A stretch of DNA of 64,000 nt from the NCBI GenBank assembly GCA_977017575.1, contig CDRNVI010000044.1:1-64000 (forward strand), written 5' to 3'. The position numbers were made by a program, and so were the translations under genes. Shown one piece after another: positions 17,139-64,000 of this stretch. Source of the DNA: Paramoeba atlantica. Lineage: Eukaryota > Protista > Discosea. The first letter of the stretch is position 1. Each line of letters opens with the position of its first letter. Below the pieces are notes generated by a model. That model did not search any database and was not told the DNA's origin. It saw nothing but the letters and a program-made list of their open reading frames with translations.

Positions 17139-17371
17139 GGGTGCTGGTCGGGTCGACAGAGTCTATGCTCACGCCTAGCCCGCGAGGGCTAGGTACCCCA
17201 AGTGAGGTAGTACACGGGTAGTGAATCTCCTCCCCGTCGGCCAGCATCCTGTTTCGCGACCGTGTCGCTGTCGACACAGGCCCGCGCCTGCGCCCTCCCA
17301 TATAGCAAGGGAAGGGTTCACAAGTCAGGCCGTGGAGTGGTCGAAAGACCCGGTCCGGAACGCGCGAATGG
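17139..17371 (+). ncRNA. Family A structured 3'UTR core, copy in A2
   Basis: Arms GGGUGCUGGUCG / CGGCCAGCAUCC and internal hairpins are conserved. Confidence 0.7.
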
Positions 17372-17551
17372 ATTGGGTCTGTATTGCTTGTTTTAGTTTT
17401 TACTGTTTCTTGTTTGTAGTATATACTTAGGGGAGATTAAATTGCCAGTTTTGGGCTGAGAAAAAACAAAAGGTACATCTGTGGAAACAAAAAGATTTGC
17501 TAATTTGATTGCTTGTTTTCAACTCGTAAAAAAAAAAAAAAAAAAAAAAAA

Positions 17552-23570: not shown

Positions 23571-23883
23571 TCATAACATAACGAAATTAAATAATCCCAC
23601 AACACTTCTGTCCTCTCCCAGCTTGCGAACGGGTGACGCGGGGACCACCCATTCGCTCGTCCTACTTCCATTTACAACCCAATCGCACGTTGATGTATTT
23701 CAGCGGTGCCTACTCCGCCCAAATAAATCATAAGGAAATTCCGTATCGCTCACCGTGCCCGTGCTTCTCGATATTCACTGCTACATTGTTTTTTTTGCAT
23801 ATAATTGGGGGGAGTAGTATTGAGTCTAACTATTGAGTCTTTTCTGTACCTTGTTGATTTTAATTTTCTATTTTTCTACGCTT

Positions 23884-43483: not shown

Positions 43484-43745
43484 GTCGACCAACAAGTTCG
43501 CACATTAGAAAAGCTCTTAAAAGTTCTTATTATTATTCACAACGATTATCCGTGTTTAGAATGCCTGCGAGATTTAGGATAATACGAACGATCTTTGGGA
43601 GAAGGCTCAGAAAAAAAAAAAAAAAAAATAGAATATTTAACGATAAAGATACAGTTTCACGAGATAAAGATACAGTTTAACGATAAAGATACAGTTTCTG
43701 TACCTTGTTGAATTATTTTCTTTTTCTTTGTCTACTCTCTTTTTG

Positions 43746-46700
43746 ATGGTGATGAACGAGACACACCCAGACAACCATCCTGAGGACACACCTTTCGACC
43801 CTGGAATCATGGATTCTAATCAGAATTCTGTCCACGAAGAAAAATCCCATGAATTGGGTAGTTGGGACCAGTTTAAGGGCAACGAACATCTTATCCGAAG
43901 CGCAAGCACCTATGACGAGAGTTTGTACACTACTGCCATCCCGCAGAATATCCCGCACGATTGGATGCGCCGTGCGCACGCTTTAGAAAAGGATATTGAA
44001 ACGCCCGACATGGGTCACGTACATGACCGAACTGAAGAGGAGATCCATTGTAGTGTCCAGCGTGATATCGATAAGTCTAATAATGCTGATTTCGAAGGAG
44101 CTGATTCGATTCCACACAGCCAACTAAGCACATTTAGCAAGGCTGCGAAGATGACCGATGAGTGCTCTAATGTCAATCCTGACGGAACCGATTCGACTTC
44201 ACTCAGCCAATTAAGCACATCTAGCAAGGCTGTGAAGACCACTGATGAGGGTCCTAATGTCAACTTCGAGGGAACTGATGCGACTTCACCCAGCCAATTG
44301 AGAAAATCTAATAAAGCTGTGAAGGCGAGATTTTTACGACACCTTCGAAACTCAGAACACTCTAAGAACTGTTACGAATCCGAAAGCAGTACGGCCACGT
44401 TCCCAGACCTCACTCCGACGGACCTCGTTTCTCATTTCTCCGTTTCTAGCAGTCTAAAGAGGCGCAAGAACAAGAAGTGCTCTAAAAGAAATATTACCTC
44501 ACAGACATCTTTGAACCAATCAGGCTCCGAAAGCACAGTAGCGACAGAGTCGGGTAGCGACGGAGTCTCCGTTGAACCGGTATCATCACAAGACAGCTGC
44601 GTCACATCGGAAGTAAAGCTTAAGCGGAACCGAGCCACTTTCAAATCCGAGCCTGTTAAATCACCTAACCTCACGCGGAAGACAAAAACATCATATAACG
44701 CTAGAAAGTGCCCAGTTGAATCATGTTTATGGCAAACCGGTCCTCATGGAAATCAATGGCAGGCGTATTATAATCACGTCTCAAACAGGCACGGGGCGGA
44801 AGTAACGGACACGTGGTGGGCAGAGGAAGGAAGATTTCGATGTGCATACTGCAAAAAACATTACCACTTAGGCAAAAAGGAGTCCCATACGCGACATTGC
44901 AAATTTCGCACACACTCATCCGATAACCCTCAGGATCCTTCCCGTGAGGTGAACGACTCCCCGAACCCTACCACAAACGCCGCTGTGATGCCTGAACGCC
45001 CCCCCGGTACGAACCCTAATGATCAGCCCGATCAGATGGAGGATGTTGACAACTTGCTGCCGACCTTATCTTCTGTGTGCACACTGCCGGTGATTACGAG
45101 CAAGGATATCCCTTATTGCTGCAGGGCTGAATGGGCACGAGTACTCACTTCCTGCTTGATGGCAGCCACGCTAGATAATACACTCGAGGCGTGGACTCTC
45201 CTTGCGATGCTTCCGAAATGTGTCCTTCCGGCCCCCCGCCGTGGAGGCAGTAAGAACAAAACCTCTTATGCGTCCTACGTTCGAAAATGTCTTTCCAGAT
45301 GGAACCAAAAGGAGTACATACCCCTCTGGAGTGAAGCAATCGCCAGTCTACAGCGCAAACGCAAATCCCCGGCGCAAGCAACCAGCGTAGAAGAAAATGA
45401 CGACAAGGCAGCTCTACGAGCGGCTAGGCTTGCCCGAGATGGAGAGCTATCGCGTGCCATGACAGCGATGACCTCGGAGCCACTCGCTCCCCATGACGAT
45501 GCCACCTACAATAAACTCATAAACAAGCACCCTCCACGACTCTCTGGCGAAGACCCAGGCGAACAACTTCCTTCATCGTCCGTAACCCCTCTCAAGATCA
45601 CACAGGAAAATGTAACCGAGGCACTCTCAAGTTTCCACAGAGGATCCTCCGGAGGGGCGTTCGGCCTTCGGCCAGAACATGTGCAGATAGCCATGGCATA
45701 TCACAACGATGAGCGCATAGATCCATTGGGAACGCTCACCAAGTTCGTTAACCATCTTCTTTCCGGAGGCGCGATGGACGAGGTCCAGCCGCACTTCGCT
45801 GGCGGACGCTTATGTGCACTTCATAAGGGAGCACACGATGTTCGGCCCATCGCCGCAGGAGAAACCCTCCGGCGTCTCGCAAGCAAGGTTGCGTGCTTTT
45901 CTGTCAAACCAAAGGCCTGTCGGCTCTTCCGAGGACATCAGTACGGGGTTGCAATACCCGCTGGAGCCGAGAGGGTAATACATTTATGCAGATTGACCAT
46001 GGCGGAACACGTTGATGACGAGGACTTCGTCTTATGTAAAGTTGATCTCCGAAATGCGTTCAACCACGTATCACGCAACAGCTTTATTTCGCTCACCCGT
46101 CAATATTTTCCTGAGCTTAGTCCCTATGTCGAATGGTGTTACTCTTCAGACAGCCGCCTAACCTTCGGAGATCGAACGATCACCTCTTCTGAAGGAGTTC
46201 AGCAGGGAGACCCACTAGGCCCTCTTTTATTTTCTCTCGTCGCGAAGGAACTATTTACGGAAATCAAGAAGGCAGCCCCAAGGCTTGACTTAAACATGTG
46301 GTTCTTGGACGATGGGGTTCTGTCAGGCAAATCTTCAGACGTCAGGCATGCACTTGACGTCATTGCAGTCGAAGGTCCCAAGTGGGGCTTACATCTCAAT
46401 GTTGCTAAATGTGAACTCATTACGAATCCAGCTGCCTCTGACCGATTTGCTCTTTTCCCGGACATTCCTGGTTTGAACAAAAACACAGACGGCAATCTTG
46501 ACATCTTGGGAAGCCCTATTGGATCTACAAGCTTTTGTCACCGATACCTATTGGAAAATCCAATCAGTCTCGCTGAGGACTCACTAACGGCAATACAAAA
46601 GTTGGATGACCCTCAAGTGGCCCTATCGCTCATTCGTCATTGCACAGGATTTTGCAAAATGGTGTATGCTCTACGCACGACACCTACCGCGGAGCTACAA

Positions 46701-47990
46701 GACCTTTGCGAACGCCTGGACCGAGCAGTCCAAAACACGACGGAGCGCTTTATCGGTCCTTTGGGTGAATCGGCTCGACGACAGGCCCAACGAGACAAAC
46801 GACACGGAGGATTAGGGTTGAGGTCCGCTGCAACACACGCCACATCAGCATACGTATCTTCTGTGGCCTTTGCGTCTGCAAATGACCGTTGGGACCCCAC
46901 GCAAGCTGAGAGTTTTGAATTCGCAGTACGGGACGTCAATAGGCGCGCGGGCTATAACTTCGTTTCAAATACAGGGAGAATTCCAAAACCTTCGTCTTCC
47001 CCACCTGAACAGTTGAACCCAGAAACAGCAAACTCCGACGATATCATCCCGGACGAAAGAATCCTAGAAGTTTTGCACCCCGACGACGCAGACCCTGAAG
47101 CCTCTCGCCCCGTACTAGTAATCCCGCGACAACGAGAATTAAGCCAGGTGATTTCAGCATCCCAATACTTGGCAGACTATAAAAACGCAGATGACAAAAC
47201 CAGAGCCCGATGGGTATCCCAAACGGGAGAAGGGGCATCGGAGTGGGCCTTTGTGATTCCATCGAAGACCAGTGGTTTCGCTTTCACTTCCGCCGAGTTT
47301 CGCACTCTGACGCGATGGTGGCTAGGGGAAAAAATTTACCCCAAGGCAAGACCCTGCCCTATGGACAAATGTGGGCTCCCGCTAGGCCCTGAGGGGGACC
47401 ATGCACTTTCCTGCAAGAGTGGGCATGGTATCATCGCTCGCCACAACGCTCTTGCCAGACAGTTTGCCCGAGACTGCACAAATGCCGGGCTTACAACGAA
47501 GCGGGAAGTAAGCCTGCATAACACGGGCCCTGGCGGCGGTCTGACGCGACCGGCGGACGTATTTATCTCAAGTTTTCGAGCGGGTCAGGGCCTTGTAATG
47601 GATTTCGCTGTCACACACGTCCAGCAAACAAAATATACGGATCTAGTCCGTGATGCTAGCGTGGTTTCAGCTGGATCCTTTGCGGAAAGATACGCAACGG
47701 AACACAAGCAGAAACAACGGGAAGAAGCCGCCGCAGCCAAACTCCGATTTGCGGCCATGGCCGTAGAATCATACGGCTCATGGTGCCCCAGCGCTATGGC
47801 TGTGATCCGTGACGTGGCAATTGAGCACTCAATGCACTCCGGTAAACTATCCAAAAAAGAAGCCTTACATCGACTTCTTGCTGGCTTGAACGTCACTTTA
47901 ATGCGGTCGCAGGCACGTATGATGGTGCTACGATCCTCACCGACACCTGACCCAGCCCTGATAGGCTATGGCGATATGGAAGTGGTGTAG
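43746..47990 (+). CDS. Polyprotein: LsmAD-like domain, zinc fingers, RT, CCHC, RLE (first ATG at 43746; tracked ORF from 43728)
   Basis: GSWDQFKGN..STYDESLYTT; CPVESC..H..H; QQGDPLGPLLF; FLDDG; RHN; RPAD..VMDF. Confidence 0.93.
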   Translation: MVMNETHPDNHPEDTPFDPGIMDSNQNSVHEEKSHELGSWDQFKGNEHLIRSASTYDESLYTTAIPQNIPHDWMRRAHALEKDIETPDMGHVHDRTEEEIHCSVQRDIDKSNNADFEGADSIPHSQLSTFSKAAKMTDECSNVNPDGTDSTSLSQLSTSSKAVKTTDEGPNVNFEGTDATSPSQLRKSNKAVKARFLRHLRNSEHSKNCYESESSTATFPDLTPTDLVSHFSVSSSLKRRKNKKCSKRNITSQTSLNQSGSESTVATESGSDGVSVEPVSSQDSCVTSEVKLKRNRATFKSEPVKSPNLTRKTKTSYNARKCPVESCLWQTGPHGNQWQAYYNHVSNRHGAEVTDTWWAEEGRFRCAYCKKHYHLGKKESHTRHCKFRTHSSDNPQDPSREVNDSPNPTTNAAVMPERPPGTNPNDQPDQMEDVDNLLPTLSSVCTLPVITSKDIPYCCRAEWARVLTSCLMAATLDNTLEAWTLLAMLPKCVLPAPRRGGSKNKTSYASYVRKCLSRWNQKEYIPLWSEAIASLQRKRKSPAQATSVEENDDKAALRAARLARDGELSRAMTAMTSEPLAPHDDATYNKLINKHPPRLSGEDPGEQLPSSSVTPLKITQENVTEALSSFHRGSSGGAFGLRPEHVQIAMAYHNDERIDPLGTLTKFVNHLLSGGAMDEVQPHFAGGRLCALHKGAHDVRPIAAGETLRRLASKVACFSVKPKACRLFRGHQYGVAIPAGAERVIHLCRLTMAEHVDDEDFVLCKVDLRNAFNHVSRNSFISLTRQYFPELSPYVEWCYSSDSRLTFGDRTITSSEGVQQGDPLGPLLFSLVAKELFTEIKKAAPRLDLNMWFLDDGVLSGKSSDVRHALDVIAVEGPKWGLHLNVAKCELITNPAASDRFALFPDIPGLNKNTDGNLDILGSPIGSTSFCHRYLLENPISLAEDSLTAIQKLDDPQVALSLIRHCTGFCKMVYALRTTPTAELQDLCERLDRAVQNTTERFIGPLGESARRQAQRDKRHGGLGLRSAATHATSAYVSSVAFASANDRWDPTQAESFEFAVRDVNRRAGYNFVSNTGRIPKPSSSPPEQLNPETANSDDIIPDERILEVLHPDDADPEASRPVLVIPRQRELSQVISASQYLADYKNADDKTRARWVSQTGEGASEWAFVIPSKTSGFAFTSAEFRTLTRWWLGEKIYPKARPCPMDKCGLPLGPEGDHALSCKSGHGIIARHNALARQFARDCTNAGLTTKREVSLHNTGPGGGLTRPADVFISSFRAGQGLVMDFAVTHVQQTKYTDLVRDASVVSAGSFAERYATEHKQKQREEAAAAKLRFAAMAVESYGSWCPSAMAVIRDVAIEHSMHSGKLSKKEALHRLLAGLNVTLMRSQARMMVLRSSPTPDPALIGYGDMEVV

Positions 47991-48018
47991 TTCCATCCTC
48001 TTTTGCATCCTCTGGTCC

Positions 48019-48251
48019 GGATGTTGGTCGTGTCGACAGAGTCTATACTCACGCCTAGCCCGCGAGGGCTAGGTACCCCAAGTGAGGTAGTACACGGGTA
48101 GTGAATCTCCTCCCCGTCGGCCAGCATCCTGTTTCGTGACCGTGTCGCTGTCGACACAGGCCCGCGCCTGCGCCCTCCCGTATAGCAAGGGAAGGGTTCA
48201 CAAGTCAGGCCGTGGAGAGGTCGAAAGACCCGGTCCGGAACGCGCGAATGG
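48019..48251 (+). ncRNA. Family A structured 3'UTR core, copy in A3 (duplicated at 50649-50881)
   Basis: Same conserved block. Confidence 0.7.
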
Positions 48252-48497
48252 ATTGGGCATGGATTGCTTGTTTTAATTTTTACTGTTTTTCTTGTTTGTA
48301 GTATATACTTAGGGGAGACTAAATTGCTAGTTTTGGGCTGAGAAAAAAGGTACATCTGTGGACAGAAAAAGAATTGCTAATTTGATTGTTTGTTAAAAAA
48401 AAAAGAAAATACTTCTGTGGAAATAAAAGGAATTGCTAATTTGATTGCTTGTTTTAAATTCATATACCACCAAAAAAAAAAAAAAAAAAAAAAAAAA

Positions 48498-48921
48498 GGC
48501 GTGAGTCTATACTCACGCCTAGCCCGCGAGGGCTAGGTACCCCAAGTGAGGTAGTACACGGGTAGTGAATCTCCTCCCCGTCGGCCAGCATCCTGTTTCG
48601 TGACCGTGTCGCTGTCGACACAGGCCCGCGCCTGCGCCCTCCTGTATAACAAGGGAAGGGTTCACAAGTCAGGCCGTGGAGAGGTCGAAAGACCCGGTCC
48701 GGAACGCGCGAATGGATTGGGCATAGATTGCTAGTTTTTATTGTTATTGTTTTTATTGTTCTTATACTTACGGGAGATCGAATTGCTAGTTTTGGGCTCC
48801 AAAATATGAAATTGCTAATTTGATTGCTTGTTTTAAAATCATATACCCCCCCAATGGACCTACTTGGTTCGTCTAATGGGTCAAAATATAGAGGCAATGC
48901 CAAAAAAAAAAAAAAAAAAAA
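48498..48921 (+). repeat. 5'-truncated family A 3'UTR copy with fold-back 5' end and poly(A)
   Basis: Starts with GGCGTGAGT-CTAT-ACTCACGCC; poly(A) at 48902-48921. Confidence 0.85.
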
Positions 48922-50500
48922 TATGGAGGTTTTGGTCTCCGATCTGCATCTGCGCACCGCTCAGCGGCGTACGTGTCTTCAGTTGCTTTTGCTGCAGAGA
49001 CGGATCGTTGGCTACCGTCAGATGCAGAAGGATTCTCTTCCGCAGTCCTGGACATCAATCGCCGGAGCGGAGGCCCCGTAGTTGATCCGGACACGGGAAG
49101 AGCATTAGAGGAGATCAGCTCCCCTTTTCCGACAGGATCTAGTCAAAGTACAGAAACGGACAATTCTTGCACCCCCCGTCAACGTGCCTTGAGCGACGCA
49201 ATCTCGGCGCACGAATTTTCATATGCGTACGCAGCGGCGGACAGTAGCACTCGCGCGAGGTACACCTCTCAGACTGGAGATGGGGCCAGCAGCTGGGCAT
49301 TTTGCATCCCATCAACAGAGCTTGGCCACGCTTACACACCCACAGAATTCCGCGCCCTCTCCAGGTGGTGGTTAGGTGCCAAGGTCTACAACGAGTTGAG
49401 CACGTGCCCAATTAACACATGCCAACAACCTCTCGACCTCGAAGGAAACCATGCAGTGTCTTGCAAAAGTGGGAATGGACTGATCTCCCGCCACAATGCG
49501 CTCATTACACAATTCACCGACACGTGCTCCAAGGCGAATTTATCACCTTCACGTGAGGTAAGCCTGGGGAACCTAGGGCCTGGCGGCTGTCCCACGAGGC
49601 CGGGCGATGTCTTTATTCCGGGCTATGAGAAAGCTCAAGGTCTGGTGCTTGATTTTGCTGTCACCCACGTTCAGCAACCTAAATACACGGACTTAGTCCG
49701 CAACGCTAACGGGGTGGCGGCAGGATCATTTGCGGAGCACTACGCCGCTTCTCACAAGGTGAAAGAGAGAGAGGAGGCGGAACAAGCAAAACATGTGTTT
49801 GTTGCCATGGTGGTAGAATCATATGGTGCTTGGAGTGCAAGTGCCCTATCAATCCTTAGATGGGTTGGGAAGCATCGCGCCTCATGTTCCCAGGGGACTC
49901 TATCTCAAGAAGCAGCTACCCGTCAGCTGCTTCAAGAGCTTAACCTCACCCTGATGCGTTCTCAATCGAGAATGCTTGTCTCACGCATGCCGGCTGAAGA
50001 TCCACAACCGGCACTTATTTTGCAGTAGCCTAAACCAAGGCTCGCGGATCCCGGCATGTTCGAAGGCTGAGGGTGCTGGTCTCGTCGACAGAGTCTATAC
50101 TCACGCCTAGTCCGTCAGGGCTAGGTACCCCAAGTGAGGTAGTACACGGGTAGTGAATCTCCTCCCCGTCGGCCAGCATCCTGTTTCGCGACCGTGTCGC
50201 TGTCGACACAGGCCCGCGCCTGCGCCCTCCCGTATAACAAGGGAAAGGTCCACAAGTCAGGCCGTGGAGAGGTCGAAAGACCCGGTCCGGAACGCGCGAA
50301 TGGTTGAGGAGCCGCCTGCAGGCCGGGTGAGGCGAAGCTGAGGGAGACCTTACCCCCCCTGAAAAGTTGAAAAGTTGGGTAGGGGAAAGCAGGAAAGTAG
50401 GGAGAAAGGTGGGAAAAGTATGTCAAGAGGTGAGAAAGAGGAGAAAGAGAGAGAAAAATTTTCTTTATTTGCATAAAAAAAAAAAAAAAAAAAAAAAAAA
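48922..50500 (+). mobile_element. 5'-truncated copy of A1 (ORF remnant to 50028, 3'UTR core 50071-50303, type-2 tail, poly(A))
   Basis: Nearly identical to the reverse complement of 6501-8075; starts directly after poly(A). Confidence 0.9.
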
Positions 50501-51115
50501 CGACTTCTTGCTGGCTTGAACGTCACTTTAATGCGGTCGCAGGCACGTATGATGGTGCTACGATCCTCACCGACACCTGACCCAGCCCTGATAGGCTATG
50601 GCGATATGGAAGTGGTGTAGTTCCATCCTCTTTTGCATCCTCTGGTCCGGATGTTGGTCGTGTCGACAGAGTCTATACTCACGCCTAGCCCGCGAGGGCT
50701 AGGTACCCCAAGTGAGGTAGTACACGGGTAGTGAATCTCCTCCCCGTCGGCCAGCATCCTGTTTCGTGACCGTGTCGCTGTCGACACAGGCCCGCGCCTG
50801 CGCCCTCCCGTATAGCAAGGGAAGGGTTCACAAGTCAGGCCGTGGAGAGGTCGAAAGACCCGGTCCGGAACGCGCGAATGGATTGGGCATGGATTGCTTG
50901 TTTTAATTTTTACTGTTTTTCTTGTTTGTAGTATATACTTAGGGGAGACTAAATTGCTAGTTTTGGGCTGAGAAAAAAGGTACATCTGTGGACAGAAAAA
51001 GAATTGCTAATTTGATTGTTTGTTAAAAAAAAAAGAAAATACTTCTGTGGAAATAAAAGGAATTGCTAATTTGATTGCTTGTTTTAAATTCAAAAAAAAA
51101 AAAAAAAAAAAAAAA
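50501..51115 (+). mobile_element. 3' fragment of A3 (last codons, 3'UTR, poly(A))
   Basis: Duplicate of ~47871-48461. Confidence 0.9.
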
Positions 51116-51335
51116 GGGACGGGGTCCTGGGGTTTGGTGGTTGTCCCTATAATTTTGGAAGGTTATAGATGTTAATCGGTTGACAAACTTTATCCTCACG
51201 CCTTGGTTTTCGAAAAAACAAGGTTCCCCAATGTGAGATAAAGGTGAGTAAAGTTTTCTTTACTCTGCGATTAGCGCCTTAATGTTTTTAACCGCGTCAT
51301 TGTTGACACGGCCAAAAAAAAAAAAAAAAAAATAG

Positions 51336-51373
51336 AACTTTAACGATAAAGATACAGTTTCTGTACCTTGTTG
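51336..51373 (+). other. Complete 38-nt spliced-leader exon copy
   Basis: AACTTTAACGATAAAGATACAGTTTCTGTACCTTGTTG: AACT start, ACAGTTTCTGTAC core and TTG end, as in kinetoplastid and diplonemid SLs. Confidence 0.88.
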
Positions 51374-51419: not shown

Positions 51420-54400
51420 ATGTCTGAAGACGATCTTCTCAAAGCCTCACCTCCGCCGATGGACGACGATTCATTTTTACAAGAGGAAGCAGTACACAAT
51501 AGAGGATCCTGGGACCAGTTTGCTGGAAACACACATCTCATTAAGCAACGGAGTACGTACAACGAATTGCTCTACACGACCCCTATTCCTGCGAACATTC
51601 CGGAAGAATGGAACATGAACGCCGCCTTGATCTCAACTGAGAACCAGACACGTGATACGGGACAGGTAGATAGTAGCGATGAGGAAACAAACCACTCACG
51701 AGTCATCAGATTACATCATGGACACCAAAAAACGCAATCTGATAGCAACACTATCACTAAAAAGTTTACTCGATGCCAACCATCTTCCACACCCCCAAGC
51801 GTCAAAGGGAATCGGGGAATCGTAAAGTCTCATCGAAAAGCGCGCGAACCAGCTACACCTCGAAAAGGGGAAGCGACGGAACATAACCCCGAAAACAACT
51901 CTCCACGCCAAATAGTACAAGGAACTTCCCTTGAAATCCCACCTTCGACGAGCGAAGCAGTTCTCACGTTTCCATCTTCCCAAAACCGTCCGACACAAAG
52001 GGAGTGCCCCGCAGAAAACTGTATTTGGAAAACTCGTGCCCATGGAGGTCAATGGCAGTCGTACTACAACCACGTTGCTTACCGACACGGAAATAACATA
52101 CCCAATGACTGGTGGACAAAGGAAGGACGATTTCTCTGCGACGCATGCGGTCGTCATTACGATATTAGCAAGAAAACTTCTCATTTGAATCATTGTAAAA
52201 TGCAATCTACACCACCCTCCTCGCAGCCGCCCTCACAACCACAGCAGCCTTCACAGCTGTCAGAGTCCGGGGAAGCCATGTACGATATACAAGGTACGCA
52301 TAGTCTACCGTCCCTAGAGGAAGTTTGCACGACTCAAATAAGCACGTGCAAGGATGTCCCACACCGATGTCGATATCTGTGGACCAGAATTTTTACCGCA
52401 GCCCTCTCCACCGCGGTAAACGAAAACTCACTGAGAGCCTGGACCCTTCTTGCCTTGCTTCCGAAATGCGTCCTACCAGCCCCGTACCGAGGAGGCCGCA
52501 AAGCTCACAAGTCCTATACCTCCTACATCTCAAAGCGAATGGAACTTTGGATACAAGGCCAATATACCACCCTATGGGCCCAAGCAAATTCGGAGCATGA
52601 CAGGAAGCGCTCAAAAGTGCCGAATAATGAGATTGAGGGTGAAGAAGACAAGGCTGCAATACGGGCTGAAATTCTGGTTCGCCAAGGAGAATTTTCCCGA
52701 GGCATGGCTGCCCTTACTGCAGCTCCACTTGCACCATACAGCGAGGAAACCCTGCTAAAGCTGCAGGAAAAACACCCTAGCCCCCATGGTAATCCCATCT
52801 CGTGCCCCCTGCCTCCCCTGGAAGAAGAAGCTTTAAAACTGGACGAATCCGAGGTGAGAAAAGCAGTAGATACCTTCCGTCGCGGATCCTCTGCTGGGAC
52901 TATGGGGCTCCGGCCTGAACACCTCCAAACAGCGCTTCAAGAGCATGTCGACCAGAATATGAATCCTCTTACGACGCTCACTTCCTTCGTAAACCATCTC
53001 CTAGCTGGCAAAGCCCCAGACGAAGTGCAACCTTTTTTTGCAGGGGCACGGCTATGCGCACTCGAAAAAGGGGAAGATGACGTGCGGCCTATCGCTGCGG
53101 GGGAAACCCTTAGACGCCTGGTGAGCAAGGCAGTGTGCCTTTCGATAAAAGAAAAAGCAGGATCCTTCTTTGGACGTCGTCAATACGGGGTCGCAGCGTC
53201 TGCTGGGGCGGAAAGAGTGATACACCTTTGTCGCCGTCTAATGAGAAATAATGAAGAAAATGAGAACATAACGTTCTGTAAGGTGGATCTTCGGAACGCC
53301 TTTAATAACGTGAGCCGACCCGTCTTCATCTTCCTCACACGAAAGCATTTCCCTGAACTATCCCCATGGGTAGAATGGTGTTATGCCAATCACAGCTGTC
53401 TCACATTCGGCAATGATTTTATCCCCTCGGCAGAAGGAGTGCAACAAGGAGACCCTCTGGGCCCACTCCTCTTCTCCTTGGTGTTAGCAGAGGTAACAGA
53501 AGAAATTGCATCAAATTCTAACCTACGAACACAATTATGGTATTTAGATGACGGTGTGCTTGTAGGTGGGCCCAAAGAAGTCCGTAAAGCCCTAGACGTC
53601 CTCGACGAGATAGGACCGAAGTGGGGACTCTTCCTGAATCTCTCCAAGTGCGAGATCATTACCCCCCCAGCATCAGCTCATACCTCCGTTTTCTTTCCTG
53701 ACATCCCCAGTGATAAAATACGGTACGACGGGAACTTCGACATTCTTGGAAGCCCAATAGGCTCTGCGGAACACTGTGCGGAGTTTCTCATGACACACGC
53801 GATTGAACCAGCCCGCGAAACATTAGAAGCTACTGCTGTGTTAGAAGATCCCCAAATAGCTCTCGCACTAATACGGCAATGTTCGGGGTTTTGTCAGATG
53901 GTGTACGCACTGCGCACCACTCCTCCCCAAGCCCTTGGAGAATTATGCCAAAAACTTGACTCTCATCTAGTCCAGGCCGTGGAGCACGCAATTTCTCCCT
54001 TAGGCGTCGCCGCTCGCGACCAAATACAACGACCAAAACGCCACGGCGGGTTCGGACTTCGCTCATCAATTCTCCACCAGTCAGCAGCCTACGTTTCTTC
54101 CGTCGCGCACGCCGCTAGCTTGGACAACTGGGACCCCACAGAAGCTGAGGGATTTTCCAGCTCAGCACATGACATAAATGACAAAGTTGGGACTGATCTG
54201 GTTGATCCATACACTGGACGCATTACCAAACCTAGTGTGCCTGGTGAATATCATGCAAATCGGAGCATCCTTTCCCGCCCAGCGAAAAGAAAACTCGCAC
54301 AATCCCTCAATCACGCCCTTCTCCCGGTCTCGACGGATCAGGAAAAGATCATCCCGAGGCAAAAACATCTCAGCCAAGCTATCTCGGATAGGGAATTTCA

Positions 54401-55220
54401 AACGGCATATTCAAAGGCAGACGCAAGAACGCGGGCGCGATGGATCTCGCAGTCCGGAAAAGGGGCCGGAAACTGGGCTTTCGCAACTCCCTCCAAGACC
54501 AGAGGCTACGCTTTCACCCACACGGAGTTTCGTACCCTAACACGCTGGTGGCTAGGCATGGACGTCTTCCCCGAAGATCGGCCTTGCCCAGCTGACGGGT
54601 GCACCCTTCCCTTGCTCAAGAATGGAGAGCACGCTTTGCTCTGCAAGAACGGCCATGGTATCATCTCACGGCACAACGCTCTGGCCCAACAATTTACATC
54701 GTTCTGCAGCAGAGCCTTCCTGGCGCCACAGAGAGAGAAGAGTTTGGGAAATCGGGGTCCTGGGGGGGCTCTCACGAGACCAGCAGACGTATTTCTGCCA
54801 ACTGCCTCCATCGCCAAAGGATCTTTAGCGCAAGGCATGGTCCTAGATTTTGCGGTCACTCACGCACAGCAAACAAAGTATTTGGACTCAGTCCACAATG
54901 CTAGCTGGGTGACCCCGGGGTCTTTTGCCGAGCACTTCGCGGAGACCAAGGCGCGACAGCGACAAGAAGCAGAAAAAGCAGGACACCTCTTCACAGCGAT
55001 GGTGGTGGAATCCTTTGGTTCCTGGAGCGAGAGTGCGCTAGCGTTACTCCGGGACATCGGAACCCAACGGGCGAATGCATCCAAAGGGCTCCTTTCACGA
55101 GACCAAGCGCGAAACGATCTCCTAACAGATCTGAACGTGACGCTAATGCGTTCTCAAGCCAGGATGATGGTTTCGCGCATCCGCGTAGAGGACCCAGCGG
55201 ATCCTTTGGTAGAGGCTTAA
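51420..55220 (+). CDS. 1266-aa polyprotein: LsmAD-like domain, zinc fingers, RT, CCHC, RLE
   Basis: GSWDQFAGN..STYNELLYTT; CPAENC..H..H; QQGDPLGPLLF; YLDDG; RHN; RPAD..VLDF. Confidence 0.93.
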   Translation: MSEDDLLKASPPPMDDDSFLQEEAVHNRGSWDQFAGNTHLIKQRSTYNELLYTTPIPANIPEEWNMNAALISTENQTRDTGQVDSSDEETNHSRVIRLHHGHQKTQSDSNTITKKFTRCQPSSTPPSVKGNRGIVKSHRKAREPATPRKGEATEHNPENNSPRQIVQGTSLEIPPSTSEAVLTFPSSQNRPTQRECPAENCIWKTRAHGGQWQSYYNHVAYRHGNNIPNDWWTKEGRFLCDACGRHYDISKKTSHLNHCKMQSTPPSSQPPSQPQQPSQLSESGEAMYDIQGTHSLPSLEEVCTTQISTCKDVPHRCRYLWTRIFTAALSTAVNENSLRAWTLLALLPKCVLPAPYRGGRKAHKSYTSYISKRMELWIQGQYTTLWAQANSEHDRKRSKVPNNEIEGEEDKAAIRAEILVRQGEFSRGMAALTAAPLAPYSEETLLKLQEKHPSPHGNPISCPLPPLEEEALKLDESEVRKAVDTFRRGSSAGTMGLRPEHLQTALQEHVDQNMNPLTTLTSFVNHLLAGKAPDEVQPFFAGARLCALEKGEDDVRPIAAGETLRRLVSKAVCLSIKEKAGSFFGRRQYGVAASAGAERVIHLCRRLMRNNEENENITFCKVDLRNAFNNVSRPVFIFLTRKHFPELSPWVEWCYANHSCLTFGNDFIPSAEGVQQGDPLGPLLFSLVLAEVTEEIASNSNLRTQLWYLDDGVLVGGPKEVRKALDVLDEIGPKWGLFLNLSKCEIITPPASAHTSVFFPDIPSDKIRYDGNFDILGSPIGSAEHCAEFLMTHAIEPARETLEATAVLEDPQIALALIRQCSGFCQMVYALRTTPPQALGELCQKLDSHLVQAVEHAISPLGVAARDQIQRPKRHGGFGLRSSILHQSAAYVSSVAHAASLDNWDPTEAEGFSSSAHDINDKVGTDLVDPYTGRITKPSVPGEYHANRSILSRPAKRKLAQSLNHALLPVSTDQEKIIPRQKHLSQAISDREFQTAYSKADARTRARWISQSGKGAGNWAFATPSKTRGYAFTHTEFRTLTRWWLGMDVFPEDRPCPADGCTLPLLKNGEHALLCKNGHGIISRHNALAQQFTSFCSRAFLAPQREKSLGNRGPGGALTRPADVFLPTASIAKGSLAQGMVLDFAVTHAQQTKYLDSVHNASWVTPGSFAEHFAETKARQRQEAEKAGHLFTAMVVESFGSWSESALALLRDIGTQRANASKGLLSRDQARNDLLTDLNVTLMRSQARMMVSRIRVEDPADPLVEA

Positions 55221-55944
55221 GCCTCTACTGACAGTCCAGTTTCAGCACGAAGACGCCATAATATCCAGGACGGGTGCTGGCCGGGTCGACAGAGACTATG
55301 CTCACGCCTAGCCCGCGAGGGCTAGGTACCCCAAGTGAGGTAGTGCACGGGCAGTGAATCTCCTCCCCGTCGGCCAGCATCCTGTTTCGCGACCGTGTCG
55401 CTGTCGACACAGGCCCGCGCCTGCGCCCTCCCACATAACAAGGGAAGGGTTCACAAGTCAGGCCGTGGAGAGGTCGAAAGACCCGGTCCGGAACGCGCGA
55501 ATGGATTGGGTCTGGATTGCTTGTTTTAGTTTTTACTGTGTCTTGTTTGTCGTATATACTTAGGGGAGATTGAATTGCTAGTTTTGGGCTGAGAAAAAAG
55601 AAAAAGAAAATATACTTCTGTGGAAATAAAAAGAATTGCTAATTTGATTGCTTGTTTTAAATTCATATACCCCCCTAAAAAAAAAAAAAAAAAAAATAGA
55701 ATATATTTTTTTTTTTTTTTTTTTGCGATTAATAAGGGGGGAGAAGTATGAAACGCGGCATTGCCTCTATATTACCCAATACATGAACCATGAAGGTCCA
55801 TTGGGGGGGGTATATGATTTGTAAACAAGCAATCAAATTAGCAATTTCACATGTTGTAGCCCAAAACTAGTAATTCAACCTGCCTTAAGTTATTTATGAT
55901 TCTGATAACAATAATAATAAAAAAGGAAGCAATCCACGCCCAAT

Positions 55945-56178
55945 CCATCCGCGCGTTCCGGACCGGGTCTTTCGACCTCACCACGGCCTGACTTGTGGAC
56001 CCTTCCCTTGTTATATGGGAGGGCGCAGGCGCGGGCTTGTGTCGACAGCGACACGGTCGCGAAACAGGAAGCTGGTCGACGGGGAGGAGATTCACTACCC
56101 GTGTACTACCTCACTTGGGGTACCTAGCCCTCGGCGAGCTAGGCGTGAGCATAGACTCTGTCGACTCGACCAGCTTCC
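55945..56178 (-). ncRNA. Family A structured 3'UTR core, copy in A6 (compensatory variant)
   Basis: Arms changed together to GGAAGCUGGUCG / CGACCAGCUUCC. Confidence 0.75.
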
Positions 56179-56276
56179 AGATCAGTTGTTTGCGAGGGCG
56201 CTAACGTGGGCCTGTGCCGACAACGGTGTGGTTAGGAAACGATTATCCCACGAGGGCTACTTACTCCGTTACCAAG

Positions 56277-59200
56277 CTATTGCTCGATCAGCGGAGTGGG
56301 AAGGTCGTCTACCGGCATTCTTGATATCATCATACGTGCCTGGCGACGCATCAGCGTTATGTTCAAGGGGGAGAAGTATGAAACGCGGCATTGCCTCTAT
56401 ATTACCCAATACATGAACCATGAAGGTCCATTGGGGGGGGGTATATGATTTGTAAACAAGCAATCAAATTAGCAATTTCACATGTTGTAGCCCAAAACTA
56501 GTAATTCAACCTGCCTTAAGTTATTTATGATTCAAGTCTGTGACGAGCTGTAGCGTAGCTGCTCCGTCACTGAGAATGCCGTTGGACGCTTTGGCCCGAC
56601 GTTCTCCTACTTTCCGAAGTACTGCTAAGGCACTAGAGCTCCAAGAGCCGTAGCTCTCTACGACCATTGCTGTGAAGTCGCTTCCCGCCGACTCAGATTC
56701 ACGGCGCTGTCGAGCTTTCTGGTCGGAGGCGTAGTGCTCAGCGAAAGACCCCGCGGCCACCCAGCTAGCATTTCTGACTGTGTCCGTGTATTTTGATTGC
56801 TGGGCGTGAGTGACCGCGAAGTCAAGCACTATAGGTTTTCCGAGGAAGAGGCTCGGCATGAAGACGTCCCCCGGTCTGGTCAAGGCACCCCCTGGGCCCC
56901 TATTCCCGAGGCTTTTCTCGCGCTGGGGTGCTAGGTGGGCCTGGCTGCAGGTGGCAGCAAACTGATCGACTAACGAGTGGTGTCGCCGGATGATACCTTC
57001 CCCATGCTTACACGTGAGAGCATGGTCTCCGTGTATGTCAAGGGGGAGCGTGCAGTTCTCCCTGGGGCATTTTGATTCTTCCCCGTAGACTGGTACCCCC
57101 AACCACCAGCGGGACAAGGTACGGAATTCTGTTGGGGTGAAGGCGTGACCGGTGTCTTTGGATGGCGTTACGAAAGCCCAGCTATTGGCCCCTTTCCCGC
57201 TCTGGGAGACCCAACGTGCGCGAGTCCTGGCGTCAGCCTTTTCATAAGCTCGCGAAAATTCCGTAGCCGAAATCGCGTGGCTTATGTCCCTTTGGCGGGG
57301 GATACCCTTTTTCGCCCAGTCCGGCAGCTTCGCGTCAAAGCAATCCTCCGTTGCATACAATGGGCATGACGTAGGGGGGAGATCATCGGGTGACAAGGGG
57401 GGGCGATCGTGTGGAAGGGAAGGGGGATTCGCAGATGAAGTAGGATCATGGGTATCCGGCTGGCGTGGGCGCTTTGCGGGGCGATGCCTCGGAGGAAATT
57501 CTTCGCATTTGTGGTGCGGGATAGTGCACACACGGCCACTTGAGTTGAGAAGCTTGGTGCCAACCTTCGCGTTTATGTCGTCAATAGATGATAGAAAGCC
57601 TTCTACTTCGGATGGATCCCAAGAGTCCATGTCTGCTGCAAAAGCAACCGAGGAAACGTAGGCTGAGGTTGCGTGAAAGGATGCTGACCGTAACCCGAAT
57701 CCTCCGTGTTTTTTCAGGCGCTGAATTTGGGACCGTGCAGAGGGAGGCAAGGGGCATAAACATGACTCTACCGCGTGCATGAGAAAATCATCCAGACGCT
57801 CGCATAAAAGTGTAAGTGATTGTGGTGGGGTCGTGCGGAGAGCGTGGACCATTTTGCAGAACCCGGCGCATTGCCGAATAAGCGCCATTGAAACCTGTGG
57901 GTCTTTGATTCTAGTTATAGCTTCTAACGCCGTTTCTGCTGGTTCAATGGCGTGCGTTGTCAGGTATTCGGAGCAATACTCTGGGGATCCAATCGGACTT
58001 CCTAGAACGCTAAAGTCGCCACGTACGTTGATTTTGGTGTCCGGTATGTCGGGAAACAAATTTGTCACGTTAGCCGAGGCAGGGGAGGTAATGATTTCAC
58101 ACTTCGACATGTTCAAGTGCAAGCCCCAGCGAGGGCCTACCCTGGCGATCGTGTCCAGTGCATTTCTGGTGTCTTGGGCCTTGCCTATGAGAACCCCGTC
58201 GTCAAGGTACCATAATTGTAGGTCCAAGTCGGCCTGGTGATTGATTTCGTTTGCTAATTCCAGGGCGACCAGGGAGAAGAAAAGAGGTCCGAGGGGGTCC
58301 CCTTGTTGGACACCTTCGTCCGATAGGAGCGTGTGGGTTCGGTAAGTGCACTAGTGGTGGTACAATGCACTAGTGGTGGTATAGCACCAGCTTGCCCATG
58401 GGAATAATTCTGGGAAGTGCTCGCTTACAAGCTTCAGGAAGGCGGTTCTGCTAACGTTGTTAAAGGCGTTTCTGAGGTCTACTTTGCAAAGAACAAAGTC
58501 AGGGTTATCAGTGTGGATGGCCATGGCTTGTCGACAAGTGTGGATTATGCGTTCAGCTCCGACTGGTGTCGCCACTCCGAACTGTAGCCCTGCGAATATG
58601 CCGCTTGCCTTGGCTTTAACTACGTTGCACGCAGTTTTGCTGACCAATCGACGAATAGTTTCCCCCGCAGCTATGGGTCGGACGTCGTTTTCGCCCTTTT
58701 CTAAGGCGCAAAGTCTGGCTCCGGCGAAATACGGTTGAACCTCTAGAGGGGCTTTACCGGCTAGAAGGTGATTTACGAGGTTTGTAATAGCTTTGAGAGG
58801 TTTCGTAGTGTTGTCTACCTGCGCTAGGAGTGCCACTTGTAGGTGTTCTGGGCGTAGGCCCATGGTTCCGGCGGAGGAGCCTCGGTGAAAGCTTTTGATG
58901 GTTTTCGCGACTGTCGCTTCATCTACCTGTAAGGGCGCTGTTGGTGGGGGGGTGTAATCGATGGCGTCGCTGTCTGAAAGGCGGCACGGGTGTTTGTTCT
59001 GAAGCTTGATATACGTTTCTTCGTCGTCAGGAGCCATTGGGTCAGCCGTGAGTGCTGCCATTCCTCTTGAGTACTCGCCTTGTCGAACCAGCAATTCTGA
59101 CCGGATGGCAGCTTTTTCCTCCTCATCGTGAACTATGTTAGGGGTTGCGGATTGCTTTTTGAGGGCGTTGTTTACTGTATCATTCCACAAAGGTACGTAA

Positions 59201-60333
59201 TCTTGCGCCAGCCATCGGTTCATGCACTTTTCGACGAATGATGCGTATGTTGTGTGATTCTTGCGTCCTCCTCGGTGCGGAGCTGGTAGGAGACACTTCG
59301 GGAGCATAGCGAATAACGTCCACGCGGCGGGGGAGTTTTCCTTGACTGCCTTTTCGGCCGTTTTTGTTAAGATTTCTCCCCAAAGATGACGGCATCGGGC
59401 GGGGACGTCTTTGCAAGTGCTCAATTGTGTCTGAGAAATAGAGGCCAACGAGGGAAGCTCGGGTTGATGCATCTGAGTTGTGGGGGGGTGGCTTTCGTCG
59501 CTTGGGTGTGACATGTGTTATGGGCTTTGAGGGGTTGTCATCTTTCCCTTGCAGGACTGTGGGTGTGTTTCCCTTTTATTGACATCGTAAGAGCGCCCGC
59601 ATGCAGCACACAGGAATCTACCTTCTGTAGCCCACCAGGCGGCAGGGATGCTGATACCGTGGCGACAGGCGACGTGGTTATAAAACGCTTGCCACGATAC
59701 CCCGTGCGCCGGGCTCCGCCAAGTGCATCCCATCGCGGGGCATTCTCGGAATTCTTCTCTGTTTTGTGTAACTTCGGTGGCTGAGTCCTTGGCCTCAGCT
59801 AGGAGAGGTGAGGGAGGGTTTTTCTCTGTCGCCGGTATTCGTTTAGAATGCCTCGTGTCTGTCTTCGTGGGTCCTTTCGAGGGAGAAACGTTGTGTAGCA
59901 GACGGGGAGAGACGTCCTGTACTACGGCATTAAGCTTCAGTGTTTTGTCGGGGGTCCGAGATGCAGGTGCGTTCTCATGAGTTGTGCTCTGCCGTCTTAC
60001 CCCACAGTGTTGCATTTCCTCGTTTTCTGCCTCAGTATGGCCCGTGTCTGGAGTTTCCCTCTCCTGTGCAATTTGGCGTGCGTGATCCATCCATTCCGCG
60101 GGAATATCCATGGGGATCGGCGTGGTATAAAGTTGCTCGTTGTATGTACTTGCAGTGGAGATCAAGTGTTTGTTCCCCTCAAACTGGTCCCAACTGCCGA
60201 GTCGGTGGGAACGCTCTTCATCGGTGAAAGTGCCTTCGCTGAGCTTACCTTCGTTTGTGTTAGTCAATATGTGGGGTGAAGGTGGATTTTTGTCTAGGCT
60301 TGCGCGAGATCGAAGACTTTGATCGCTTTTCAT
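56277..60333 (-). pseudogene. A6 polyprotein with three lesions
   Basis: In-frame TAA at 59518-59520; a 16-nt direct duplication (58347-58362 / 58366-58381) causing a frameshift; a 164-bp insert at 56367-56530. The C-terminus LNITLMRRQARMMISRMPVDDLPTPLIEQ* resumes after the insert. Confidence 0.88.
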
Positions 60334-60475
60334 GGGGAAGGACGCTAATCCCCGGGGAGTAACTAAAGAAAGGAAAAATAATTCAACAAGGTACAGAAAC
60401 TGTATCTTTATCGTTAAAAAAAAAAATAGAATATATTTTAGAAGAAAGAATTTTTCAGTCTTGAACGTTTGAGGT

Positions 60476-60527
60476 TGTCTTAATAAAAAGTGTTGTCTTA
60501 ATATAAAGTGTTGTCTTAATAAAAAGT
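60476..60527. repeat. Short tandem repeat (GTTGTCTTAATAWAAAGT)x~3
   Basis: Read directly; related to the repeat at 62030-62092. Confidence 0.8.
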
Positions 60528-60854
60528 ACCCAACTATCCAAGAACTATCCATTAAGATTTTCTTTTTCTTTTTCTTTTTCTCTTTATGATGATGAAATAT
60601 GGACTTTATATATTTTGTTTTGTAATTTTATCGCTTCAAAAAAAGTCTAATGTTTTTATGTACGTTTCGAACTTTCCACCACTTAAAACCCTTCACCCTA
60701 CTTCCTTCCTTCCCCTACTTCCTTCCTTCCTTCCTTCCTTCCTTCCCCTACTTCCTTCCCCTCACTACATTCACTTCCCTTCTCCCACTTACTCCCTTCC
60801 GACTGACTCGTCCCTACTGACCGACTCGTCCGCACTGTGGCCCATGTGGTCCAG

Positions 60855-61758: not shown

Positions 61759-62000
61759 TTTTTTTGCGATTAATAAGGGGGGAGAAGTATGAAACGCGGC
61801 ATTGCCTCTATATTACCCAATACATGAACCATGAAGGTCCATTGGGGGGGGTATATGATTTGTAAACAAGCCATCAAATTAGCAATTTCACATGTTGTAG
61901 CCCAAAACTAGTAATTCAACCTGCCTTAAGTTATTTATGATTCTGATAACAATAATAATAAAAAAGGAAGCAATCCACGCCCAATCCATCCGCGCGTTCC
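61759..62000 (-). repeat. Family A type-1 tail fragment (A6-like) with poly(A)
   Basis: Matches ~55725-55958. Confidence 0.85.
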
Positions 62001-62092: not shown

Positions 62093-64000
62093 TTTTTTTT
62101 TTTTTTTTTTTTTTTTTTCTGCAATTAATAAGGGGGGAGAAGTATGAATCGCGGCATTGCCTCTATAATTTGACCCAGTAGACGAACCAAGTACATAGTA
62201 GGTCCATTAGGGGGGTATATGAATTTAAAACAAGCAATCAAATTAGCAATTCTTTTCATTTCCACAGAAGTATATTTTCTTGAATTTTTTTGTTTTTTCT
62301 CAGCCCAAAACTAGCAATTTAATCTTCCCTAAGTATATACTACAAACAAGAAACAGTAAAAACTAAAACAAGCAATCCACGCCCAATCCATTCGCGCGTT
62401 CCGGACCGGGTCTTTCGACCTCTCCACGGCCTGACTTGTGAACCCTTCCCTTGCTATATGGGAGGGCGCAGGCGCGGGCCTGTGTCGACAGCGACACGGT
62501 CGCGAAACAGGATGCTGGTCGACGGGGAGGAGATTCACTTCCCGTGTACTACCTCACTTGGGGTACCTAGCCCTCGCGGGCCAGGCGTGAGCATAGACTC
62601 TGTCGACTCGACCAACATCCAGGCCAGAAGTTTTCCTTACTCTTCTTTGCCATACCCCACAAGTGCAGGGCCTGTGTTCGCCGAGGGGAGGCGAAGAACG
62701 AGCATACGCGCCTGGGAGCGCATGAGGGTGACGTTCAGACTTGTTAGTATTTGCTGTAACGCCCCCCCTTGCGAAAGTGTTCCACCTGAGGTCGCAGCTT
62801 GGCCTTTCGAGACTTCCCGCAAGATCGACATAGCGGCCGGACTCCAGCATCCGTATGTTTCGACAGCCATAGCTGTGAACTTGATCTTCGCTTCTTCAGC
62901 TTCCTTCCGTTGCTTCCGCTTGTGTTCGACGGCGTACCTCTCGGCGAATGACCCGGCTGCCACCATGTTAGCATCACGGACCAGGTCCGTATACTTTTGT
63001 TGCTGAACATGTGTGACAGCGAAATCAAGGACGAGGGCCTGACCGAGACCACCGTTCCGGACATAGACATCTGCGGGTCGCGTGAGGGCGCCGCCCGGAC
63101 CCCTGTTTCCCAGAGAGACTTCTCTCTGTGGGCTCAACCCGGCCTTGCTGCATTCAGCGGAGAACTGTTCCGCTAGGGCGTTGTGCCTTGTAATGATTCC
63201 GTGGCCGCACTTGCAGGCTAGCGCATGGTCCCCCCCAGGGCCGAGTGGGAGGCGACAATTCGGAATCGGGCAGTTGTGACCTTGAGGGTATATACTCTCC
63301 CCGAGCCACCAACGAATCAGAGTCCGAAATTCAGTAGGGGTGTAGGCATGACCGCAGAGAGTCGAGGGAACCGTGAAGGCCCAGTTGGATGCCCCGTCGC
63401 CCGTTTGTGAGAGCCACCTAGCCCGAGTGCGGGGATCCGCTCTTGCGTAATCTTCCTCAAAGTCTCTCGCTGAAATCGCATGACTGAGATCGCGTTGTCG
63501 AGGAATCGCCAAATCTTGAGAAAGGTCAATATCGGGGGAGGGCGAGAAGGGGCATCTCTTTATGACGGAGTCCTTGTGGATTTTCCCGGTAGATTTGTCC
63601 ACCATACACCCCCCTACACGCCGGTTAATGTCCTCCACGGCGTAAGAAAAGCCCTCAGCCTCATTTGCATCCCATCGATCCTTGTCGGAAGCGAAAGCTA
63701 CTGAAGCTACGTACGCTGAGGTGGCATGCATTTCCGCTGAGCGAAGGCCGAGACCGCCGAACTGTTTATTTCTTTGTGCTTGTCGTCGAGCCATGTCACT
63801 CAGTGGGCGACAAAACGTTTCAACCGTACGCTGAACGGCGTTGTCGAGTCTGCGACATAAGTCCAGTAGTTCGTCCGTCGGCGTCGTGCGAAGGGAGTAA
63901 ACCATCTGGCAAAACCCTGTGCACTGTCGGATGAGAGAGAAAGCGACCTGAGGGTCCTCCAGTTTCTCGATCGCTTCAAGGGATTCCTCCGCCTGGGAAA
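62093..64000 (-). mobile_element. Family A CRE-like element A7, 3' part (continues beyond the window)
   Basis: RLE ORF, 3'UTR core at 62388-62620, type-1 tail and poly(A) at ~62093-62118. Confidence 0.92.
62637..63998 (-). CDS. C-terminal part of the family A7 polyprotein (thumb, CCHC, RLE); open to the window end
   Basis: The frame continues upstream of 63905 (EDPQVAFSLIRQCTGFCQMVYSLR); CPIPNC..H..AC, RHN, RPAD..VLDF. Confidence 0.92.
   Translation of the reverse strand, partial: SQAEESLEAIEKLEDPQVAFSLIRQCTGFCQMVYSLRTTPTDELLDLCRRLDNAVQRTVETFCRPLSDMARRQAQRNKQFGGLGLRSAEMHATSAYVASVAFASDKDRWDANEAEGFSYAVEDINRRVGGCMVDKSTGKIHKDSVIKRCPFSPSPDIDLSQDLAIPRQRDLSHAISARDFEEDYARADPRTRARWLSQTGDGASNWAFTVPSTLCGHAYTPTEFRTLIRWWLGESIYPQGHNCPIPNCRLPLGPGGDHALACKCGHGIITRHNALAEQFSAECSKAGLSPQREVSLGNRGPGGALTRPADVYVRNGGLGQALVLDFAVTHVQQQKYTDLVRDANMVAAGSFAERYAVEHKRKQRKEAEEAKIKFTAMAVETYGCWSPAAMSILREVSKGQAATSGGTLSQGGALQQILTSLNVTLMRSQARMLVLRLPSANTGPALVGYGKEE

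Follow-up and report, generated by a model that had tools for sequence, protein, structure and literature searches.

A two-domain structured RNA in the 3′UTR of R2/CRE-like retrotransposons of Paramoeba atlantica is a candidate recognition module for reverse transcriptase

The window analysed here, a stretch of 64,000 nucleotides (64 kb) of a contig from Paramoeba atlantica, is crowded with reverse-transcriptase (RT) ORFs on both strands. The proteins of family A have N-terminal zinc fingers, an RT, and a C-terminal CCHC motif with a PD..D-like (RPAD..D) nuclease motif, as read by eye in the translations, and their nearest solved structures in the PDB are R2 proteins. On the basis of these features, we refer to the elements as R2/CRE-like non-LTR retrotransposons. 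Family A comprises 14 lineages, the proteins of which are 45–60% identical over their full length and 55–86% identical over the last 290 amino acids. Retro-copied units bear at their 5′ end a kinetoplastid-like spliced leader of 38 nt. We observed this leader, complete, where two units meet, past the poly(A) of the one and ahead of the 5′UTR of the other (51336–51373 in the window; L036 ~5037–5075), which indicates that the copies were made from trans-spliced mRNAs. The split-leader pattern expected on insertion into spliced-leader genes does not match the leader at either place. New copies begin immediately past the poly(A) of older copies. Giardia-type and Penelope-like telomeric arrays were also considered and were abandoned in view of the spliced leader and of the R2-like features of the proteins.

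An LsmAD-like motif (SWDQF...STYNELLYTT) was noted in the N-terminal part of family A proteins (amino acids 60–114 of ORF 43728–47990, 134–181 of ORF 59518–60552 and 30–55 of ORF 51420–55220); of the matches to Pfam PF06741, the better one is barely above the cut-off and the other barely below it. Metagenomic relatives that are about 41% identical (P0020 and P0021) possess an MLLE/PABC domain. Taken together, these observations suggest a link to the biology of poly(A)-binding proteins.

The block under study occupies positions 55951–56180 of the minus strand, its RNA sense running from 56180 to 55951. When it was compared with the window by BLAST, 11 full-length copies were found, one of them with about 20 nt missing at its 5′ end, as well as several that were more severely truncated. 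A 20-mer taken from the block had 429 matches (about 430 copies) in the whole eukaryotic genome searched (45.7 Mb), as compared to 0 for the control. In the window, all family A RT ORFs, remnants included, are followed by a copy 30–85 nt past the stop codon (8/8). The order is always a spacer, the module, a variable tail in which ATTGCTTGTTTT-like motifs recur, and finally poly(A), the distance from module to poly(A) being 170–230 nt in the autonomous elements. The edges of the block are sharp: the spacer between the stop codon and the first helix (P1) cannot be aligned, and at least two kinds of tail can be distinguished beyond ...CGCGAAUGG. These edges coincide with the outer helices of the predicted fold, P1 and P5. 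The summed depth of aligned contigs, which is a count of contigs and not of RNA, was about 20–30 times greater on the core than on the adjoining ORF.

On the minus strand, copies are found at 3074–3302 (3′ of ORF 3375–5483, lineage 4, with the alternative tail), 6697–6925 (3′ of ORF 6966–10907, lineage 5), 11225–11453 (identical in sequence to the preceding one) and 62394–62622 (3′ of ORF 62637–63905, lineage 0). Those on the plus strand lie at 48017–48245 (3′ of ORF 43728–47990, lineage 1), 50069–50297 (3′ of ORF 48973–50028), 50647–50875 (identical to 48017–48245) and 55270–55498 (3′ of ORF 51420–55220, lineage 3). All of these were identified both by BLAST and with covariance models (CMs) of the two domains of the module. 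Another plus-strand copy, at 17137–17365 (3′ of ORF 13085–17098, lineage 2), has a tail and poly(A) extending to ~17552; it was identified with the CM and was also folded as a single sequence. The CM also detected a 5′-truncated plus-strand copy at 48496–48709, which begins right at the end of the poly(A) of the preceding unit, and three pieces of the second domain (D2) of the module: a partial, diverged D2 of type IV at 5833–5922 (minus strand), a D2-only remnant of a 5′-truncated copy at 6192–6309 (minus strand) and a second D2-only remnant at 11833–11950.

The cores of eleven lineages, which we call type I, are 93–99% identical to one another. Type II is ~81% identical to type I, and types III and IV are each ~76% identical to it. 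At least 20 copies of type IV were found with 95–100% mutual identity, indicating that this type stems from a live family. Further core types, 77–83% identical to types III and IV, were observed at G000 C29:464448, C74:98728, C21:1493-8568, C69:435781 and other places, some of them in tandem arrays with a period of ~2.28 kb. A previous examination of this DNA, based on its letters and ORFs and referred to below as the sequence-only reading, had described a block that is almost invariant between elements with clearly diverged proteins and that is present in the 3′UTR of all family A elements. Both statements agree with the identities of the type I cores and of the proteins and with the 8/8 ORFs of the window. 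The block it delimited is also real, though not with the limits 55945–56178 that it gave, the true ones being slightly wider at the 5′ end of the RNA.

RNAalifold, applied to 18 sequences, predicted 74 pairs distributed over two domains, with 96.8% of the cells paired. Domain 1 (D1; 56065–56180, minus strand, like all helices listed here) forms a four-way junction according to RNAalifold, pair counts and single-sequence folds. It consists of the long-range helix P1 (56166–56178 with 56067–56079), a small hairpin P1a (56157–56164), a long arm made of P2 (56145–56154 with 56106–56114) and hairpin P3 (56122–56144), and P4 (56080–56101). P2 and P3 are separated by the internal loop UACCCCAA (56115–56121; (U)ACCCCAA), which is near-invariant even in remote copies of low GC content (alignments A2, A6 and A8). 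D2 (55951–56068) forms a second four-way junction, with P5 (56055–56065 with 55955–55964), hairpin P6 and its CUGU loop (56039–56054), a long arm P7/P8 (55981–56035) and P9 (55966–55977; GGUC-GAAA-GACC). The whole module at 55951–56180, which belongs to lineage 6 and type I, scored 131.5 bits for D1 and 143.6 bits for D2, with a z-score of −4.1 for its MFE fold. MFE folding of two single copies (z = −4.1 and −3.7) recovered the long-range helix.

On the minus (sense) strand, positions 56178–56167 read GGAAGCUGGUCG and positions 56078–56067 read CGACCAGCUUCC, forming 12 base pairs with no mismatch. In the copy located 3′ of ORF 43728–47990, the two strands are GGAUGUUGGUCG and CGGCCAGCAUCC. Across copies, one pair of this helix changes from A-U to U-A and another one is found as U-A, U.G or C-G. 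The hairpin CCUAGCCC-GCGA-GGGCUAGG varies in type I solely through G.U wobbles (CUAGUCC, CUGGCCC, CUAGCUC), and the stems CUCAC/GUGAG, GUGUCG/CGACAC and CCCUCCC/GGGAAGGG are retained in the alignments. The sequence-only reading had singled out these same elements: its sequences, coordinates and covariation for the 12-bp helix were exact, its description of the hairpin is valid within type I, and the stems that it reported as kept are indeed kept.

Across types, 14 pairs of the RNAalifold structure showed compensatory changes, as compared to 6.5 ± 1.4 in shuffled alignments, none of which (0/500) reached the observed value. Sliding the structure by 1–3 columns gave only 2–4 such pairs. The clearest case is P4: type I has AG-GA/UC-CU, type II GGGAAC/GUUCCC, type III AGGGG/CCCCU and type IV GGAUUCGGA/UCCGAAUCC. 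In CM-fitted alignments, which are biased towards the model and have to be read with this in mind, 19/39 pairs were changed on both sides in D1 versus 10 in shuffles, and 17/38 in D2 versus 2.8 in shuffles. Unguided alignment of 12 diverse D1 sequences with MAFFT, followed by RNAalifold, recovered P1 to P4; 14 pairs were changed on both sides in this set, a number reached by 1 of 500 shuffles, while the slid controls gave 1–7.

The two strands behaved very differently in these analyses. On the sense strand, the copies scored 125–147 bits with the D1 and D2 models. For D1, the scores were 125–139 bits on the sense strand versus 13–19 bits on the antisense strand, and the D2 CM search gave no antisense match at E ≤ 1. 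Furthermore, G.U cells were far more numerous than A.C cells (99 versus 13 in alignment A2, 54 versus 4 in alignment A8). This excess indicates that the structure is that of the sense RNA, not that of the DNA or of the antisense strand.

Remote copies of D1 scored 34–59 bits with the D1 CM, at a GC content of 38–58%. When folded singly, they displayed the same four helices, and CUCACGCCU and GGU(A/U)CCCCAA(U)GUGAG were kept. One of them, with 38% GC, lies in the window at 51165–51281 (plus strand) in a short non-coding unit ending with poly(A); its CM score was 50.6 bits (E = 2e-9), and its independent MFE fold contained the same four helices. D2 is near-invariant even where it is unpaired, and this may point to an additional constraint, for instance a host factor.

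A protein-coding role of the module was rejected: every sense frame contains stops, and lengths differ by non-multiples of three. The antisense strand of type I has a single open frame, which types II and IV do not keep open. Two additional pairings were considered by eye, a pseudoknot between the ACCCCAA loop and UUGGG just past D2, and base pairs joining the P8 loop to the tail motif UUGCUUGUU; both were discarded, the partners being inconsistently placed in types II–IV.

We also compared the variants found among type I copies. Private variants at paired sites broke the pair in 23/26 cases, while variants common to at least four copies kept it in 11/14 cases (Fisher p = 4e-5 versus private). 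The common variants favoured unpaired columns; the private ones struck paired and unpaired columns about equally, which is how decay after insertion should look. Among lineage representatives, 11/148 paired columns were variable versus 17/89 unpaired ones (p = 0.01), and 7 of the 9 variable pairs stayed standard in every lineage. Since shared variants keep pairs and private variants break them, pairing is selected in the propagating lineages, which refutes pure gene conversion as the source of the similarity.

Exchange between lineages is nevertheless real. Lineages 1 and 10 have proteins that are 58% identical and cores that are 99% identical; lineages 7 and 8, with 60% identical proteins, both have type II cores (96% identical); and lineages 3 and 7, the proteins of which are 83% identical, have cores of different types (81% identical). 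The tail kinds are again distributed independently, in a mosaic manner. This incongruence between core type and protein tree implies that lineages have swapped the module, the simplest routes being template switching or recombination, and the exchange accounts for much of the near-identity of the cores. One and the same type I core serves proteins that are only 55–60% identical, and no signal of RNA–protein co-evolution was found.

The main proposal of the sequence-only reading, a functional and covarying sense-strand RNA domain in the 3′UTR, is thus supported by the pair changes, the folds of remote copies, the private and shared variants and the G.U asymmetry. What it had named as counter-evidence, a lack of covariation with identity due purely to gene conversion, is not what we found, the compensatory changes exceeding those of the controls.

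The module is restricted in its distribution. Family B, which is represented by four tandem RT copies (23833–43483; period 5371 bp, 1179 amino acids) about 22–26% identical to family A, showed no trace of it behind the ORFs in a search with the D1 and D2 CMs. An ENA assembly that comes from this organism or a very close one contains an RT lineage (L054:10001-16000) whose region from the RT to the C-terminus is about 56% identical to that of family A; behind its ORF, no D1 was detected even with the filters switched off, and a search with default filters detected no D2. No module was detected in relatives with ~40% identical RTs (L051 and L052, the latter sequence ending 61 nt past the stop codon). 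ENA contigs L053 and L056 do carry it, their organism appearing to be the same or near-identical and not an independent species. Its absence from family B and from the 56% identical lineage indicates that the module is specific to one group of elements. Recognition RNAs are usually specific in this way.

The module is also present on two kinds of non-autonomous units. One of them, non-coding and ending with poly(A), is ~1.1 kb long (L010:1955-3078) and has an internal direct repeat of ~400 bp; its short form in the window covers 51116–51305 plus poly(A) (to 51335), i.e. ~190 nt. This carrier lacks a spliced leader and begins right where the poly(A) of the unit before it ends. It has the low-GC D1 near its 5′ end, to which the long form adds a degenerate D2 devoid of P9, and in the long form the module lies ~800 nt ahead of the poly(A). 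At least 40 copies were scored among 94 candidates genome-wide. The second carrier (L036 ~5035-6323) has the spliced leader at its start and contains an ORF of 261 aa, the product of which shows no similarity to RT proteins. At its 3′ end, D1 alone is followed by GCGCGAAUG, a tail rich in purines and a poly(A). [quoted passage not shown]

The closest parallel is found in R2 elements. The R2 protein selectively binds a structured RNA in its own 3′UTR and thereby starts TPRT (PMC11194090, PMC12222951). Like the 3′UTR RNAs of Bombyx R2Bm and zebra finch R2Tg, which are structured over ~230–250 nt, the module lies on the sense strand in the 3′UTR of an RLE-type non-LTR element, and its structure is conserved beyond sequence between diverged types, here through compensatory changes (PMC11194090, PMC12222951). 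As with these R2 RNAs, the presumed role of the module is to select the template for the RT of its own element. Unlike them, the module is made of two tandem four-way junctions, it has no detectable homology with them in sequence or structure (no Rfam match), its element ends with a long tail and poly(A) and not directly at the module, and one near-identical version is common to many lineages in one genome.

Stringent-type LINE/SINE pairs, such as eel UnaL2 and UnaSINE1, share 3′ stem-loops. Here too, the same structural motif is found on autonomous elements and on non-autonomous poly(A) units, which suggests trans-mobilisation through recognition of the motif. In contrast with these pairs, the module measures 115–230 nt and is not a short stem-loop, its non-autonomous copies have the fold in common but not much of the sequence, and it does not directly precede the 3′ repeat or poly(A), from which it is separated by 170–230 nt, or by ~800 nt in the long non-coding unit, where it is near the 5′ end. 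HDV-like ribozymes, which occur in R2, L1Tc (Pr77) and other non-LTR elements, including those of kinetoplastids, are likewise conserved structured RNAs within retrotransposon transcripts. These are nested double pseudoknots situated at the 5′ end, whereas the module is a junction-forming RNA of the 3′UTR that matches no HDV-type model. In functional terms, these comparisons most likely group the module with the R2 3′UTR element, and less closely with the 3′ motifs common to LINE/SINE pairs. Neither its sequence nor its fold matches a described family.

We therefore propose that the module is probably a cis-acting RNA through which the RT of this R2/CRE-like family recognizes its template. Of the three functions that the sequence-only reading had offered (RT recognition element, ribozyme or stability element), this one fits best, because the module is located in the 3′UTR of an R2-like element and because diverged copies ride on retro-copied non-autonomous units; the ribozyme receives no support from Rfam. 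In the scheme that we envisage, the sense transcript would form the two adjacent junctions D1 and D2, which the protein of the element itself would recognize. This binding, which by analogy with R2 most likely involves the RT and serves TPRT, would lead to the assembly of an RNP and to the choice of the module-bearing RNA as template. Reverse transcription would then start at the poly(A) end, ~170–230 nt downstream, in a manner that would parallel the action of the R2 protein on its own 3′UTR. If the module is such a ticket to copying, selection would maintain it in propagating lineages, recombination or template switching would spread it between lineages, and non-autonomous RNAs would acquire it. 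Four observations speak against RT recognition: the module is not at the 3′ end of the RNA, there is no sign of co-evolution, a 56% identical RT lineage shows no module behind its ORF, and D2 is almost invariant even in unpaired positions.

We considered the possibility that the module is a post-transcriptional control element, acting on mRNA stability, export, translation or choice of the poly(A) site, and that it is read by host factors in an organism that regulates mainly via 3′UTRs. The distance to the poly(A), the interchangeability among proteins only 55–60% identical and the near-invariance of D2 leave room for such a role. A sense-strand structure in a 3′UTR, with near-invariant loops and stems in D2, is compatible with it; a constant host reader would be expected to tolerate exchange among lineages with very different proteins; and the LsmAD-like motif of family A and the MLLE domain of its relatives offer links to the host mRNP machinery. 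Yet, in the 380 kb examined, the module was confined to retroelement units and was found in no ordinary gene, and the fact that retro-copied non-coding carriers keep the fold while changing most of their sequence is more easily explained by a need for reverse transcription. We consequently regard a host-read element as a rather improbable alternative to recognition by the RT. If the similarity merely reflected recent gene conversion or recombination, or if the block acted as DNA, for instance as a nuclease target, the discordance between core types and the protein tree (lineages 7/8 and 3/7) and the mosaic tails would be accounted for, since exchange does occur. Against both versions stand, however, the compensatory changes seen from type to type and in the remote copies, a strong excess of G.U over A.C, shared variants that keep pairs where private ones break them, and edges that coincide with P1 and P5, and we give hardly any credence to the idea that the block has no RNA function.

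A self-cleaving ribozyme, or another processing signal that trims the transcript, might also be compact, with several helices around a junction and invariant unpaired nucleotides, and HDV-like ribozymes do exist in R2 and L1Tc, though at 5′ ends. The sequence-only reading had raised this possibility, but no ribozyme family of Rfam 15, whether HDV-like, hammerhead, hairpin, twister, pistol or hatchet, was matched by types I–IV at gathering or permissive thresholds. More generally, Rfam 15 gave no match in the window at the gathering threshold, chance-level matches only in the module region at E ≤ 10 (mir-133 and SpF56 rows, far below threshold) and no match for types II–IV, and ARAGORN found no tRNA- or tmRNA-like fold in the window. 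Cleavage in the 3′UTR would moreover separate the ORF from the poly(A) with which it is copied, whereas genomic copies contain ORF, module, tail and poly(A) as a single stretch; nor is there a common truncation point inside the module beyond the ordinary, variable 5′ truncation. A ribozyme or trimming signal thus appears very unlikely. Slightly less so, though still quite unlikely, is a new class of active RNA, either self-processing or mimicking a host RNA to recruit a priming factor, which would serve as a cassette making any RNA copyable. Maintenance of helices alone indeed leaves unexplained the invariant unpaired UACCCCAA, the CUGU and GAAA loops, the 9-nt loop of P8 and the near-invariance of D2.

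To our knowledge, RT-recognition RNAs are known in detail solely from animal R2 elements, where they are now used in building gene-insertion tools. The present module is a second, unrelated and well-delimited candidate, from a protist. Its natural variants, i.e. the four core types and the low-GC versions that keep the fold and a few loops, already map the nucleotides that are important. As a single RNA module is exchanged among a dozen lineages of elements and borrowed by non-autonomous units, competition for a common signal becomes directly testable. The module also warrants a new RNA family entry.

Some additional features were noted around the module copies. The copy at 55951–56180 belongs to a lineage-6 unit that is rearranged or 5′-truncated: a tail fragment of 167 bp at 56367–56533 separates it from the upstream ORF. 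This fragment occurs three times in the window (55737–55902, 56367–56533 and 61778–61943) with 99–100% identity, and at 56367–56533 it sits between the truncated ORF 56521–58227 and the 464-nt lineage-6 3′ end that holds the module, so that the element called A6 in the sequence-only reading is rearranged or composite. In type I tails, the final ~40 nt ahead of the poly(A) are conserved (TTGCTAATTTGATTGCTTGTTTT; observed at 17480–17552, 51040–51115 and L010:3215-3265), and the motif ATTGCT(T/A)GTTTT occurs two or three times per tail. These tail sequences may represent a second cis element or be related to the insertion site. Partial internal duplications of the module were also seen: the spacer immediately preceding lineage-6 cores contains a P5/P6-like segment (56185–56241 in the window, minus strand), and lineage-12 cores are preceded, at a distance of about 30 nt, by a degenerate second D1 (36 bits; L031:6077-6174).
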